Sequence record: LC819007.1
Reading direction: 5' to 3' (one strand)
DNA: 64,000 nucleotides
Position numbers and translations under genes: made by a program. The stretch's first letter is position 1, and every line of letters starts with the position of its first letter. The notes beneath the pieces are model-generated. The model searched no databases, was not told where the DNA came from, and saw nothing but the letters and a program-made list of their open reading frames with translations. Below are positions 379-60,091 of the stretch, piece by piece.

Positions 379-957
379 TTAAGCCGCCATGGCTTCGTAG
401 CTGTATTCCAGCGTCATGCTCAGGACCGGTTTGCCAGCCACCATAAAGGCGACGTGCATACCGGCTTGCGTCGGGGTGAACTTGACGTGATGCGGCGTGG
501 TCGAATCTTTCGGTTTGGCGGAAGTCCGCATCGCCTTGAACCCTTCGACCGCGTAGTGCGAGAACCGGGGATTGGCCATCAGTACTTCGTGGGCCTTACA
601 CCACTCCACGCTCTTGCCCAGCATCGAGAGATCGTGTTTGCGCGGCGGAACCTTGTCTTTCACGACGTCCGTGTAGACTGCCACGCTCTCACCACGCTCA
701 GAGAGCTTCACCTGTTCGAAGACCCGAGCATCAACCTTCGAATGGAACGTCACGATCAGGAGATCACCCTCACCATGCGTGCGAATGAACGAACCGGTAT
801 TCTTACCAGCGCGCACCCACAGACGATCGAGCGCTTCCCACAGCGCTCGCATCACCAGTCCGTTATCGAACTCGTGATCAAACCCCAGATCCCGCAAGGC
901 GTACATAAACGCCATCACATCGTCAAACGACTTCCCGGCAATGGTCTTGATCTTCAT
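379..957 (-). CDS. Hypothetical protein (192 aa)
   Basis: ORF track; co-oriented operon, ends at terminator. Confidence 0.8.
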   Translation of the reverse strand: MKIKTIAGKSFDDVMAFMYALRDLGFDHEFDNGLVMRALWEALDRLWVRAGKNTGSFIRTHGEGDLLIVTFHSKVDARVFEQVKLSERGESVAVYTDVVKDKVPPRKHDLSMLGKSVEWCKAHEVLMANPRFSHYAVEGFKAMRTSAKPKDSTTPHHVKFTPTQAGMHVAFMVAGKPVLSMTLEYSYEAMAA

Positions 958-986
958 GGCGGCTCATTCTAAAGTGACTGCGTTAG

Positions 987-1652
987 TTATCCCCAAGGAT
1001 GCCAGTTAGCGTCCTTGTCTGCTTTTTCTTCTGCGATCAGCTTGTCCAGCTCTGCCACGGTCCAGGGCAGTTCGTAGTCTGGACTGAGGCGACGGCGTGT
1101 CAACGGATTGAACACGCCCTTGGCCTTCAGTGCATGAGTCTCTTCCGAGTATTTCATCATGCCCGGATGACGACAGTCGGTCACACAGCCGTAGCTGTGG
1201 TCGTAGCCGAAACCTTCACGACGTGTGAAGCCATCGAAACCTTCAGAACCGTGGTAATAGATAAGCCATTCACGACCCATTCCTTCACTGATCGTGCGCA
1301 TCAGGATGTCGCCGGGCGCGACCACCAGGTGTTGGTACAGACCTGAACACAACATCATGAAGATCATTTCATCGGCGTGCTTGCAGCTGGCACGGCTCTC
1401 GTACTGGATACAGTCGTCGAGTTCTTCCTTCACCCGCCATTCGTACGTTTCGAAATACGCTGATGAGCTCTGCAACATGCTTTCCAGCCGACTGATAGCC
1501 ATCAGGTAGAAGTTCGCTGCATTCGGAATCGGCGGTGCGGTCACGCGTGGTGCGTTATTGATCGCGTATGCCGAATCTAGGAATGCGAAGACTTCAGCCG
1601 GTGCGTCTTTCTTGACTTTCAGTCGAGACGCTACCGCAGTGTAATTGGCCAT
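987..1652 (-). CDS. Hypothetical protein, paralog of 1662..2276
   Basis: Shares Y.(A/G).A(S/T)RLKV(K/R)K.APA, (Y/W).WRVKE and YESRA.C motifs with neighbour. Confidence 0.85.
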   Translation of the reverse strand: MANYTAVASRLKVKKDAPAEVFAFLDSAYAINNAPRVTAPPIPNAANFYLMAISRLESMLQSSSAYFETYEWRVKEELDDCIQYESRASCKHADEMIFMMLCSGLYQHLVVAPGDILMRTISEGMGREWLIYYHGSEGFDGFTRREGFGYDHSYGCVTDCRHPGMMKYSEETHALKAKGVFNPLTRRRLSPDYELPWTVAELDKLIAEEKADKDANWHPWG

Positions 1653-1661
1653 AATGGTTCC

Positions 1662-2276
1662 TTATGCCGCCTGATCGATTCGATCCAGCAGCTTGGTGCT
1701 CCAGGGAGGCACGAAAGCGTCAGCAGACGCCTTGCGCGAAGTCCGGCTGATCGCACCCACCAGGATCTTGGCTTTCATGTCCTGCGGGTACGTGAACCGG
1801 GTCGGATGTCGATCGTCATCGAGCACTTCCGTAAAGCCCCGAAGGGTGCAGTTGTACTCGAATCCGATTGTTTCGGTAAAGCGGCGTCGACGGCCGTCGT
1901 AACACAGCGCGATCTCTCGCACGCTCGTGGTATAGAGCTTACGGGCGACGATGTCTCCGTCGTTCACAATCAGCCACGGTTGAATGGACCGCAGCAGCAT
2001 GGCGAAGAGGTCGAGGCTGCCGAAATGGCAAGCCGCACGACTTTCATACACCCAGTGATTACCCTTGTTCTCCTTGACGCGCCATCCCCAGGTCTCGAAC
2101 GGATCAGCGACCGACGACAGCATCGTACGCAGCGTCGAGCTGTTACGCGAGCCGATCAGTGAGATCGACTCAGGCGGAGTGACAATGCCGTACAGATCAT
2201 CCAGCATGGCGATGGTGCTCGCAGGAGCGGACTTCCGTACTTTAAGCCGGGTGGCTATGCCTTCATAAGCACTCAT
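1662..2276 (-). CDS. Hypothetical protein, paralog of 987..1652
   Basis: As above; first gene after early-promoter-like motif at 2311. Confidence 0.85.
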   Translation of the reverse strand: MSAYEGIATRLKVRKSAPASTIAMLDDLYGIVTPPESISLIGSRNSSTLRTMLSSVADPFETWGWRVKENKGNHWVYESRAACHFGSLDLFAMLLRSIQPWLIVNDGDIVARKLYTTSVREIALCYDGRRRRFTETIGFEYNCTLRGFTEVLDDDRHPTRFTYPQDMKAKILVGAISRTSRKASADAFVPPWSTKLLDRIDQAA

Positions 2277-2310
2277 TCAGAAATCTCTTCAGTTGGGTTA
2301 ATTCACAGTT

Positions 2311-2320
2311 GTAATGTAAG
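2311..2320 (-). promoter_or_regulatory. Putative early promoter element (TTACATTAC)
   Basis: Resembles phiKZ virion-RNAP early promoter TATATTAC; intergenic, upstream of minus operon. Confidence 0.5.
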
Positions 2321-2390
2321 CTCAAAGAAATCTTCAAATCAATTTCGCTAAGGGTATAAACCGACCGAGCTTACGTCCATAGAATTTTAG

Positions 2391-2430
2391 CGGCATAAAA
2401 AAGTGGGAGAGGGCCAATGCCCTCCCCCCG
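2391..2430 (-). terminator. Hairpin + TTTTTTATGCCG terminator
   Basis: GGGAGGGC/GCCCTCTCCC stem then T-run-ATGCCG; closes the large non-coding region. Confidence 0.7.
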
Positions 2431-3178
2431 TAGTGTATTGTCACCTATGGACGCTCCACCAAACGCCATAAGATCCAACCCGCAAACAAACTACCACAGC
2501 ACGAACGACGCCTCTAGACTTTAGTGAGCGCGGGGAGGGGATACGGGCCCATCTACCTATCTTACCCCTCCCCACCGCCTCGGCCAGGTCACCATCAAAC
2601 CCGGGCAAAGAGTGGCGATGCCCACTCACTACCTCCAGTGTTCTCCGCGCATAAATGCACATTGGGTCAGCTCCCAACTCACTGAAGGAACTACGCTCGT
2701 TCTAACGTAGCTTTGCTTTTTACCGCATACCAAGATAGCGGTGTTGACCTCTCCTCGTTCACTTGGGCTTTCGAGGTTTCGCAATACCATATCCTTCTCG
2801 GGATAGGCTGGTGCTGCATGAGGTAGAGACAGGCTGCCGTACAACGACTTGCACATTTTCCCTACGCTGCTGCTACCCAGGCTACCCTTCTAAACCAGGC
2901 ACACAACCATTGCATGGCTGCGCCGGTTCATCTACGTTTGACTTTAATTGTCGACCACAAATCTCTTCGCTACGATAGTTCTTTGGAGGTGTCCCGGTCT
3001 TACATTCCGGCTACTGATCCGATGACTCGGGTGGAGGGAATCAGTGGCGGGCTGCCGTTGTAGGGAGATCTGAGTGTCGCCTGTCACTCACGACGGACGA
3101 AAAAATGTGACGGTCCAGAAAGATAGTCCACGAGCTTTCCGAACGTGAGAAGTTCGGTGCGGGCTTAGGGGACACAAC
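2431..3178 (-). ncRNA. Large structured ncRNA candidate (~750 nt; GOLLD/ROOL-class size)
   Basis: No credible ORF; more than ten hairpins, several with G-U pairs or GNRA loops on the minus strand; bounded by a TATG start motif and a terminator. Confidence 0.6.
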
Positions 3179-3195
3179 ATATGGGTAATTTTTTA
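3178..3195 (-). promoter_or_regulatory. Putative late promoter (AT-rich + TATG)
   Basis: Minus strand AAAAAATTACCCATATG; phiKZ nvRNAP late promoters carry TATG at -3..+1. Confidence 0.45.
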
Positions 3196-3253
3196 TTGCC
3201 ATCATACATAACAGCAAAAAAAAAATAACTCAGGTGGCCGAAGCCACCCAAGC

Positions 3254-3355
3254 TTACTTCAGCCAATGCACTAATGCAGCGATTACGCCCAGCACGATTA
3301 CCAGCTTGAGCTTGTTCTTCTGCACTTGCACATAGAACTCGGGCTCTTCCACCAT
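3254..3355 (-). CDS. Small membrane protein (33 aa, MVEEPEFYVQVQKNKLKLVIVLGVIAALVHWLK)
   Basis: Manual translation; hydrophobic C-half; follows 3360..3548 and precedes a hairpin. Confidence 0.6.
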   Translation of the reverse strand: MVEEPEFYVQVQKNKLKLVIVLGVIAALVHWLK

Positions 3356-3359
3356 CCGA

Positions 3360-3548
3360 TCAAACACAGTTCGTTTTCCCACCAGTAGCCTCCCTGTAAG
3401 CAGTGTAGACCATCTCACGAATCTTTCTAATGAGAGCGTCTTGAATAGCCTTGTCCTTTGCCGACATAACTGGTTGTTCTTTCTTTACCTTGAAGGGGGC
3501 AAGTTGATCGCGTCGTAGACGACGCTTGCGTTGATAAGTCGCATTCAT
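3360..3548 (-). CDS. Small basic hypothetical protein (62 aa)
   Basis: ORF track; ATGA-type overlap with upstream gene. Confidence 0.7.
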   Translation of the reverse strand: MNATYQRKRRLRRDQLAPFKVKKEQPVMSAKDKAIQDALIRKIREMVYTAYREATGGKTNCV

Positions 3549-4428: not shown

Positions 4429-4516
4429 TGGTGGAGAAGGTTGGATTCGAACCAACGTAGGCACTAAGGCCAACAGATTTACAGTCTGCCCCCTTTAGCC
4501 ACTCGGGCACCTCTCC
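4429..4516 (-). tRNA. tRNA-Tyr(GTA)
   Basis: Cloverleaf, loop CTGTAAA, long variable arm, encoded CCA. Confidence 0.95.
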
Positions 4517-4531
4517 GATACTTCTGAAACT

Positions 4532-4607
4532 TGGCTCCCCAGGGTGGACTCGAACCACCGACCAACGGATTAACAGTCCGCTACTCTACCGACTGAGCTA
4601 CTAGGGA
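4532..4607 (-). tRNA. tRNA-Asn(GTT)
   Basis: 76-nt cloverleaf, loop CTGTTAA, encoded CCA. Confidence 0.95.
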
Positions 4608-4624
4608 TCTACTACAGGAAAACG

Positions 4625-4701
4625 TGGCGCGGCGTAGGGGACTTGAACCCCTGACCCCTGGCGTGACAGGCCAGTACTCTAACCAGCTGAGCTAACACCG
4701 C
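4625..4701 (-). tRNA. tRNA-Asp(GTC)
   Basis: Cloverleaf, loop CTGTCAC, G73, encoded CCA. Confidence 0.93.
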
Positions 4702-4715
4702 AAACTACAAAACTC

Positions 4716-4793
4716 TGGAAGGGGCGGTAGGATTCGAACCTACGAATACCGGAATCAAAATCCGGGGCCTTGGACCAGCTTGGCGACACCCCC
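4716..4793 (-). tRNA. tRNA-Gln(TTG)
   Basis: Cloverleaf, CCGGA/TCCGG stem, loop TTTTGAT, encoded CCA; G1-U72 and U73. Confidence 0.9.
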
Positions 4794-59554: not shown

Positions 59555-60091
59555 TTAGATAAAAGGGGGTTTCCAGGCTTTACCAGAGAGAATGCCGACC
59601 ATGATGTCGTCCGTGACTTCACCCGCATACTCCATCTCCGAGATCGAGATGAAGTCGCTTGAAGCCGTCACCACACACATGGCTTGGATATTGGCCTTGA
59701 AGGGTTGGAAGATATCGCGGAAGGTGAAGTACACTTGGTCGATATGGTTCGGGCACGCAGCGAGCGTCTTCTTAGCCCAATCGCGTTGGGCAATCCCCAG
59801 GGTTTTATCGTCACGTTCGTAAAGCACATCCATCTGCTGCACGCTGCGCATGAACGCCATCCCTTCTCGCCAGGCATACAACACACCTGCTGCGTCTTCG
59901 AGACGGGGGTAGTGCGTGACATTCATCGTCATGCGTCGGTCTTCACCCAGCCAGAGCGTGGTGTCCGTACCGACGTAAGTCGTCACGTGCTCGGGCGGGA
60001 CATAACCGATCTCGTGTTTGATGGGGTCGTAATAAAACTGCTTCATTTTGAACTGCTCGATGAGACTCAGCGCTTCCTGGTTCATGCCCAT
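59555..60091 (-). CDS. Hypothetical protein (178 aa)
   Basis: Start MGMNQEA with GAGG. Confidence 0.7.
   Translation of the reverse strand: MGMNQEALSLIEQFKMKQFYYDPIKHEIGYVPPEHVTTYVGTDTTLWLGEDRRMTMNVTHYPRLEDAAGVLYAWREGMAFMRSVQQMDVLYERDDKTLGIAQRDWAKKTLAACPNHIDQVYFTFRDIFQPFKANIQAMCVVTASSDFISISEMEYAGEVTDDIMVGILSGKAWKPPFI

Follow-up and report, generated by a model that had tools for sequence, protein, structure and literature searches.

A predicted large structured non-coding RNA beside tRNA genes in RP12-like Ralstonia jumbo phages

The locus in FLC4-3B and its relatives

The window analyzed here, a stretch of 64,000 nucleotides (nt), is 100% identical to Ralstonia phage FLC4-3B (LC819007.1, 291 kb), an RP12-like, phiKZ-related jumbo phage, and its minus strand holds a predicted large non-coding RNA (ncRNA) that is the subject of this report. 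The RNA lies in a gap of 1046 nt, gp125 to gp124, that carries no annotation in the GenBank record. An equivalent gap without an annotated gene is present in the sister phage FLC1-1B (98-99% identical to FLC4-3B), in RP12 (917 nt, ORF128 to ORF127) and in RP31, i.e., in all four GenBank records, and gene callers leave ~960-1070 nt empty at the same place in seven metagenomic/Logan contigs. RP12 and RP31 match this stretch of the window at 73% identity over 800 nt, and the BLASTn alignment of the FLC and RP12 genomes covers only 35% of their length (PMC11530567). An earlier note on this DNA had singled out ~750 nt free of open reading frames (ORFs) in an otherwise gene-dense genome, and the stretch has proved real, non-coding and unannotated in each of the four records.

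Two intrinsic terminators found by a terminator scan, 3254-3227 and 2428-2405, bracket the interval on the minus strand. The first of these is the upstream limit of the RNA unit, and its stem shows a compensatory change in RP12. Further upstream lie four tRNA genes (Table 1). Same-strand tRNA genes are found 1-2 kb upstream of the RNA in the FLC phages, RP12, the metagenomic genomes UViG_3300049460 (hereafter UViG) and Ga0495606, and the contigs L029 and L027, and tRNA genes are thus a conserved genomic neighbor of the RNA. The RP12 tRNA gene concerned is the only one annotated in its 280-kb genome (PMC5468394). ARAGORN and Rfam found no tRNA inside 2391-3178, and the tRNAs of the window are confined to the cluster at 4429-4793.

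Table 1. Coordinates of the predicted RNA, its parts and flanking signals in the FLC4-3B window (aa, amino acids; bp, base pairs)
Feature	Position	Strand	Remarks
Four tRNA genes (Gln, Asp, Asn, Tyr)	4429..4793	-	1.25 kb upstream of the RNA; ARAGORN/Rfam
Intrinsic terminator of the upstream gene (probable 42-aa membrane protein)	3217..3254	-	Hairpin 3254-3227 and T run; terminator scan
Promoter-like region	3173..3196	-	A-rich tract and TTACCC box (3194-3183), then TATG (3181-3178)
Whole predicted RNA, ~780-785 nt	2396..3178	-	Putative 5' end at G3178 or G3173; 3' end in U run 2402-2397
Accessory 5' domain, ~315-320 nt	2859..3172	-	Closed by UCCC/GGGA; RNAalifold, six lineages
Long-range helix, ~22 bp, around most of the 5' domain	2876..3134	-	Strands 3134-3112 (5') and 2898-2876 (3')
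Universal 263-nt core, ten helices	2522..2784	-	Model R1, all eight lineages
3'-tail hairpin	2444..2473	-	Invariant loop UUGGUGGA; stem pairs covary
Intrinsic terminator of the RNA	2391..2428	-	10-bp GC-rich hairpin 2428-2405, U run 2402-2397, tail TTTTATGCCG
TTTTATGCC sites in the window	2392, 16918, 38951, 41790, 57008, 59091, 63650		

Conservation, folding and architecture

Homologues of the RNA were found by motif scans and by searches anchored on neighboring proteins, and fall into eight lineages. Six carry the RNA at full length (777-839 nt): FLC4-3B and FLC1-1B; RP12 and RP31; IMG/VR UViG and JGI Ga0495606; the Logan soil contigs L019, L020, L023 and others; the MTEW/MTET metagenome contigs L014 and L033; and JGI Ga0495636 (L028). 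In two more distant lineages, L027 (Logan SRR28388881) and L029 (Logan SRR25400369), only the 3' part can be aligned. The full-length RNAs are 67-82% identical between lineages and contain invariant blocks of up to 40 nt, whereas for the neighboring protein gp124 the figure is 38% between FLC4-3B and RP12, which places this non-coding stretch among the best-conserved DNA of the region. Purifying selection on the RNA region is, to judge from these figures, much stronger than on the neighboring protein genes.

A core covariance model, R1, was built from the part common to all eight lineages (2784-2522; 263 positions, 68 pairs) and scores 188-290 bits in all of them. It matches once each in FLC4-3B, RP12 and UViG, showing a single copy per genome, and gives no match in phiKZ, RSL2, RSF1, Ea35-70 or SA002. 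A blastn search with three divergent versions of the RNA, including those of L027 and L029, against 50,697 phage records returned only five Ralstonia records, scans of genome contigs for RNA homologues found none, and a scan anchored on the dCTP-deaminase recovered only the two IMG/VR genomes already found. The 17-mer TCGACAATTAAAGTCAA also hit seven chance loci (L007-L013), none of which was upheld by nhmmer or the covariance model. The AAA protein of L029 is 56% identical to RP12 ORF123 and has no match in other sequenced phages, so that even the distant versions of the RNA belong to the RP12-like clade. By these searches, the family is confined to RP12-like Ralstonia jumbo phages and their uncultured relatives from soil, rhizosphere and wastewater.

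The interval is conserved, but is it translated? Its longest ORFs (75-78 aa) are not conserved, and ORFs of 42-78 aa are present on both strands. Substitutions distribute over the three codon phases as 88/81/70 against RP12 and 45/40/44 against UViG, and indels, mostly of 1, 2, 4 or 7 nt, are frequent and break every reading frame. Sense ORFs yield common peptides only where invariant RNA blocks dictate them and diverge by frameshift beyond, and the 75-aa sense ORF, searched in translation against 5.8 billion proteins, has no relatives there. An antisense ORF of 49-52 aa (49 aa in FLC4-3B, 2914-3063, plus strand) is open in four lineages and begins in the complement of the invariant GCAGCCAUGC block. 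Truncation in L019 and L028 leaves 30 aa and 9 aa of it, and it has no codon-position bias, so that it is a side effect of the conserved RNA and a pitfall for gene calling. On this sequence evidence the interval is non-coding.

The minus strand has a predicted folding energy of -297.9 kcal/mol (z = -3.6 against shuffles), compared with z = -1.0 for the plus strand. Over the full length of the RNA in the six full-length lineages, RNAalifold predicts 190 pairs, 43 of which are kept through changes on both sides. In the core, standard pairs occupy 98.2% of the cells of the R1 alignment, both sides have changed in 27 of the 68 pairs, and the covariation score is 0.266. On four of the five measures used, all 500 shuffles fall short of the observed value; on the fifth, further pair types, 12 of them reach it. 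When the 3' partners are slid by 1-3 columns, pairing falls to 37-49% and double changes to 2-6. The 5' domain (RNAalifold, six lineages) has double changes in 19 of 71 pairs (0-8 in slid controls) with 90.6% of cells paired (controls 31-43%), and the 3' tail has them in nine of 26 pairs (1-5 in slid controls). Several core pairs are invariant G-U, among them five G-U or U-G pairs kept in all or nearly all sequences; read on the other strand they would be A-C mismatches, which places the RNA on the minus strand. An elaborate minus-strand secondary structure is, on these comparisons, kept by compensatory substitutions, and the generic marks of a structured ncRNA, compensatory change together with a lack of coding signal, are both present.

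These counts agree with the claims of the earlier note that the minus strand specifies a densely structured RNA and that G-U pairs favor this strand. Among the hairpins it listed, CCGAAC/GTTCGG (3157-3139), ACCGC/GCGGT, GCTACG/CGTAGT, TTGGG/CCCAA and GGGGAGGGG/CCCCTCCCC are retained with compensatory changes. CAGCCAT/ATGGTTG is not a conserved pairing and gives way to an outer stem plus GCA/UGC, GAGTGG/CCACTC is likewise replaced, by the long-range helix UAGUGAGU/GCUCACUA, and the GTCAC/GTGAC hairpin found no support as a conserved pairing.

The family is, by comparison of its members, modular: the 3' core is always present, and the 5' domain and 3' tail hairpin are dispensable. The 5' domain contains the hairpin 3157-3139 and three invariant motifs, namely a CUC-CACCC-GAG hairpin, GUCGACAAUUAAAGUCAA and a GCA-GCCA-UGC hairpin. 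In the ~22-bp helix that encloses most of this domain the majority of pairs are invariant or show changes on one side only, with one pair changing from C-G to U-A in two lineages. A variable linker with lineage-specific insertions joins the 5' domain to the core. The core helices include the P-c hairpin (GCUACGUU...AGCGUAGU), a GUUGGG-AGCUGA-CCCAAU hairpin, the closing helix UAGUGAGU/GCUCACUA and an 11-bp GGGGAGGGG stem, which is capped by an invariant 24-nt apical region with GGGCCC. This apical region, the loop AGCUGA and the junction GGUAAAAAGCAAAG are among the invariant loops and junctions of the core, and the most conserved positions of the RNA as a whole are unpaired loops and junctions. 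The 3'-tail hairpin follows and then the terminator. Two natural mini versions delimit what can be lost. In L027 (~420 nt) a condensed 5' leader of ~75 nt precedes core and tail, and in L029 (~350 nt) an unrelated 75-nt leader precedes a core that ends right after its closing helix and is followed by a U run.

Each RNA has exactly one CCACC, always in the form YCCACCNGAG, and it co-occurs with the GGUGG loop of the tail in seven lineages; both are absent in L029. This pattern of presence and absence suggests a loop-loop contact between CCACC of the 5' domain and GGUGG of the 3' tail, probably acting as a clamp of the two peripheral parts, although the invariance of both motifs keeps it a candidate. 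Another possible pairing, between GUCAAAC in the 5' domain and GUUUGAU in a core hairpin, was judged by eye; it shows one compensatory change in RP12 but mismatches in three lineages, and was not adopted. CCUAAG/UAUGG, which resembles a tetraloop receptor in FLC4-3B, is not conserved in other lineages.

Ends of the RNA, its occurrence in libraries and neighboring genes

The edges of conservation coincide with candidate transcription signals. Mean pairwise identity rises from 0.48 in the 80 nt before the RNA to 0.61 in its first 80 nt, and drops from 0.62 in its last 80 nt to 0.41 downstream. An A/T-rich tract with a TTnCCC-like box (AAAAAATTACCC in FLC4-3B) lies upstream in all eight lineages, as judged by alignment or by eye, and TATG stands at the 5' edge of conservation in seven of the eight, including L027 and L029 despite their differing downstream sequence. 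In phiKZ the non-virion RNA polymerase requires TATG, whose G is +1, at its late promoters, and middle promoters are marked by AAAnTTACC (PMC4666361). The late-promoter-like TATG start proposed earlier holds in part, since FLC4-3B does have a TATG (3181-3178) and the family has one at its edge, but the position at which the other lineages carry it (3176-3173) reads TGTG in FLC4-3B, whose own TATG is 5 nt upstream. FLC4-3B and FLC1-1B differ exactly at this putative start, where FLC4-3B has a 3-nt insertion and TGTG for TATG, and the 5-nt displacement may represent a natural shift of the start site. The sole exact match to TTATGTCCC elsewhere in the window (59997-60005) falls within coding sequence.

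At the 3' end the terminator stem (2428-2405) covaries through compensatory changes, which together with the terminator scan confirms the hairpin terminator suggested earlier. The window holds seven copies of the tail element TTTTATGCC, where 0.32 would be expected, all of them directly after a GC-rich hairpin, and this over-representation identifies it as the usual terminator form of FLC4-3B. The TATG within TTTTATGCC could also serve as a restart site for the phage RNA polymerase.

Relatives' versions of the RNA core are present in two root metatranscriptome samples and in one wastewater cDNA run. Two contigs of the root metatranscriptome run X10 (286 and 253 nt, ~90% identical) map inside the RNA. 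Relatives' versions also occur in soil and rhizosphere DNA metagenomes, and one 26-kb DNA metagenome contig aligns over ~870 nt (2405-3271) with 110 differing letters.

The gene directly upstream of the RNA (3257-3382, minus strand) probably encodes a 42-aa single-pass membrane protein and not the annotated 33-aa gp125. The 42-aa form has a GTG start behind an AGGGAGG Shine-Dalgarno sequence and matches phrog_36842 end to end (E = 1e-16). The gene in this position encodes 42 aa in the UViG-type, L019-type and L028 contigs and 41 aa in RP12, and the L027 counterpart, of 51 aa, has a ...FDRMVE..FYV.VQK.KL... motif in common with FLC4-3B. Downstream, gp124 and gp123 (382-2207, minus strand) both match phrog_4334, of unknown function; a member of this family always follows the RNA on the same strand. 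An AAA+ ATPase (PF00004) is encoded further downstream in most lineages except FLC4-3B. Homologues also occur in Erwinia Ea35-70-like phages, which are without the RNA. Pfam and PHROGs assign the neighboring proteins only to families of unknown function, so they suggest no partner for the RNA. In L029, the mini RNA is directly preceded by another gene-free, hairpin-rich stretch of ~350 nt with its own terminator (L029:1234-1600), and at L029:820-922 Rfam gives a 103-nt tRNA-like match where ARAGORN gives none, which may be a tRNA with an insertion.

A new RNA family and its possible functions

A cmscan of the 64-kb window against 4227 Rfam 15 families gave no match in the interval at the gathering score. 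At E<=10, the region 2200-3400 and the contigs L014, L027, L028 and L029 returned only the neighboring tRNAs and chance fragments (SNORD73, HOTTIP_1), so that the RNA does not belong to GOLLD, ROOL, OLE, RNase P RNA, tmRNA or the group I/II introns as Rfam models them. An intron is further contradicted by the lack of an interrupted ORF, the element sitting between a terminator and the upstream region of the next gene. The RNA is not described in the genome papers of RP12/RP31 and the FLC phages (PMC5468394, PMC11530567), and a 2023 survey of viral structured RNAs makes no mention of Ralstonia, jumbo phages or RP12. By these comparisons it is a new family of large structured phage ncRNA outside every Rfam family. 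The earlier note had left the choice between a GOLLD/ROOL relative and a new giant ncRNA class; a conserved, covarying RNA of 777-839 nt without an Rfam match favors the latter, and the former finds no backing as homology, since cmscan against both models stays empty even at E<=10.

The interval 3178/3173-2396 on the minus strand is thus best explained, in our view with good probability, as a stand-alone gene for a ~785-nt ncRNA, the representative of a family outside Rfam that is carried by RP12-like phages. A discrete transcript would result, begun by the phage's own RNA polymerase at a phiKZ-type TATG promoter and ended at the hairpin-UUUUAUGCC terminator that this phage normally uses. This RNA would act in trans by virtue of its three-dimensional fold and not by antisense pairing, whether as an RNA-only assembly, a ribonucleoprotein scaffold or a ribozyme. 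Action through the fold is suggested because the most conserved positions are unpaired and because an optional periphery around an invariant core is typical of fold-dependent RNAs. Several observations weigh against this reading. The lineages that count as effectively independent number only about eight, the alignments used for the pair counts had been fitted to the structure, and many pairs carry no information because they do not vary. The start is out of register with the family in FLC4-3B (TGTG for TATG), and the composite A-rich/TTnCCC-N-TATG pattern occurs only once in the window and so is no general promoter signature of this phage, which makes the promoter assignment tentative. One of the X10 contigs extends ~10 nt upstream of the conserved ATG and proposed start, the metatranscriptome contigs are only suggestive of expression given possible DNA carry-over, and a discrete transcript is a prediction for the cultured members. 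Finally, the sequence points to no substrate, partner or chemistry, and the functional part of the proposal is drawn from analogy.

How do other explanations fare? That the interval is protein-coding after all, through small ORFs or an unusual code, or works at the DNA level, e.g., as an origin or packaging site, could be argued from the 42-78-aa ORFs on both strands and the antisense frame open in four lineages. It is nevertheless highly improbable: indels shift the frame, third codon positions are not enriched in substitutions, L019 and L028 have only a truncated antisense ORF, the translated search found no relatives, and strand-specific G-U pairs with compensatory changes are properties of RNA and not of duplex DNA. 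A cis-acting leader, i.e., an attenuator or riboswitch-like 5' untranslated region that governs the paralogous ~200-aa genes (gp124, gp123...) by regulated read-through of the terminator, would account for the phrog_4334 member that is always found downstream on the same strand, and the conserved tail TTTTATGCCG does contain TATG. The terminator is, however, a strong 10-bp GC hairpin with a U run, a form that recurs at six further hairpins of the window; the spacer before the next gene varies from 115 to 470 nt; the adjacent gene itself varies in length and identity across lineages; and 350-840 nt with ten or more conserved helices is far beyond known leaders. We consider such a leader very unlikely, and would say the same of true homology to GOLLD (or ROOL) at so high a divergence that the Rfam models, being too narrow, miss it. 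No match to them appeared on the window at the gathering level, nor at E<=10 on the 1.2-kb region and four homologues, two of them compact, and no common sequence block was seen.

The remaining alternatives concern what a stand-alone RNA would do. The likeliest area of action may be tRNA handling or translation during infection, as suggested by the linkage to tRNA genes, the analogy with GOLLD and ROOL, and two invariant UGGUG loops able to pair with the CACCA 3' end of tRNA, but this is put forward only tentatively, since the internal CCACC offers another explanation for these loops. A more specific version, in which tRNAs are the direct target of a ribozyme or ribonucleoprotein RNA that processes them in the manner of RNase P or binds their 3' ends, is unlikely. 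It fits the constant linkage to tRNA genes, which in RP12 involves the only annotated one (PMC5468394), and the two UGGUG loops, one of which is kept by each mini version. RNase P and T-box RNAs bind the CCA end through GGU/UGGN motifs. Against it, none of the RNase P and T-box models gives a match at E<=10, a P4-type pseudoknot was not identified, and UGGUG complements the RNA's own CCACC loop, so that a tRNA is unnecessary to explain it. A motif of 4-5 nt is also weak evidence. Somewhat less doubtful, if still speculative, is the broader proposal that phiKZ-related jumbo phages use their own polymerase to make a new ornate RNA class whose invariant core is a ribozyme or the unit of an RNA-only multimer (through AGCU and GGGCCC), and which acts on tRNAs or ribosomes in the infected cell. 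If true, this would be a third, independently evolved counterpart of GOLLD and ROOL, and one with cultured virulent phages and a culturable Ralstonia host.

Whatever its role, the RNA would join a small group. To our knowledge, covariation has proven the fold of only a handful of bacterial or phage RNAs longer than 500 nt, namely rRNAs, RNase P, introns, OLE, GOLLD, ROOL, HEARO and raiA. Each of these has opened up new RNA biology, and what GOLLD and ROOL do is still not known. The present family appears to be an independent further example that is large, ornate, phage-borne and placed beside tRNA genes, and in the literature that we found it would be the first large structured ncRNA of phiKZ-related jumbo phages. 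Should one cause underlie the recurrent association of giant RNAs with tRNA genes, the existence of a third, unrelated family allows a comparative test. The system is also favorable for experiment: four virulent phages (FLC4-3B, FLC1-1B, RP12 and RP31) are in culture with culturable Ralstonia hosts, the RNA is single-copy, and the mini versions already delimit a 263-nt minimal core. Rifampicin does not block the replication of RP12/RP31, i.e., host RNA polymerase is not needed (PMC5468394), and this independence raises the question of where the RNA is made and acts.

Comparison with known RNA systems

In its 5' flank the RNA gene resembles units transcribed by the phiKZ non-virion RNA polymerase, with TATG at the edge and an AAAnTTACC-like box upstream (PMC4666361). 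It differs in the spacing, the box being ~8-13 nt from TATG here and not ~24 nt, and in the TGTG that FLC4-3B carries at the conserved position. Bacterial RNase P RNA is close in size to the mini versions (350-420 nt), combines a conserved core with peripheral stabilizing domains, is functionally tied to tRNAs and likewise has GGU-containing loops. However, no RNase P model (bacterial A/B or archaeal) matches at E<=10, mini versions included, and neither CR-I to CR-V nor the P4 pseudoknot is recognized in the present RNA.

ROOL (RF03087) is also a large ornate RNA of phages and prophages near tRNA islands, is not known to have a protein partner, and forms RNA-only cages via kissing loops (PMC12286853). 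The conserved self-complementary motifs of the present RNA, AGCU in a hairpin loop and the apical GGGCCC, could in principle kiss as well. Its helix topology is nevertheless different, the ROOL covariance model does not match it, and ROOL is without an optional 5' domain. GOLLD RNAs are phage-borne, measure ~800 nt or more, lie near tRNA islands and are conserved in their 3' region and variable in the 5' region (PMC12286853). The GOLLD model (RF01998) finds no match of sequence or structure in the present RNA, which is without an embedded tRNA and is found in Ralstonia jumbo phages and uncultured soil relatives, whereas the hosts of GOLLD are Lactobacillales and marine and lake bacteria. What the two have in common is a phage or prophage origin, a size of ~800 nt, a frequent position beside tRNA genes, an ornate multi-helix fold and a conserved 3' with a variable 5' part, here a universal 3' core with an optional 5' domain; this organization is a resemblance of kind and not evidence of homology.

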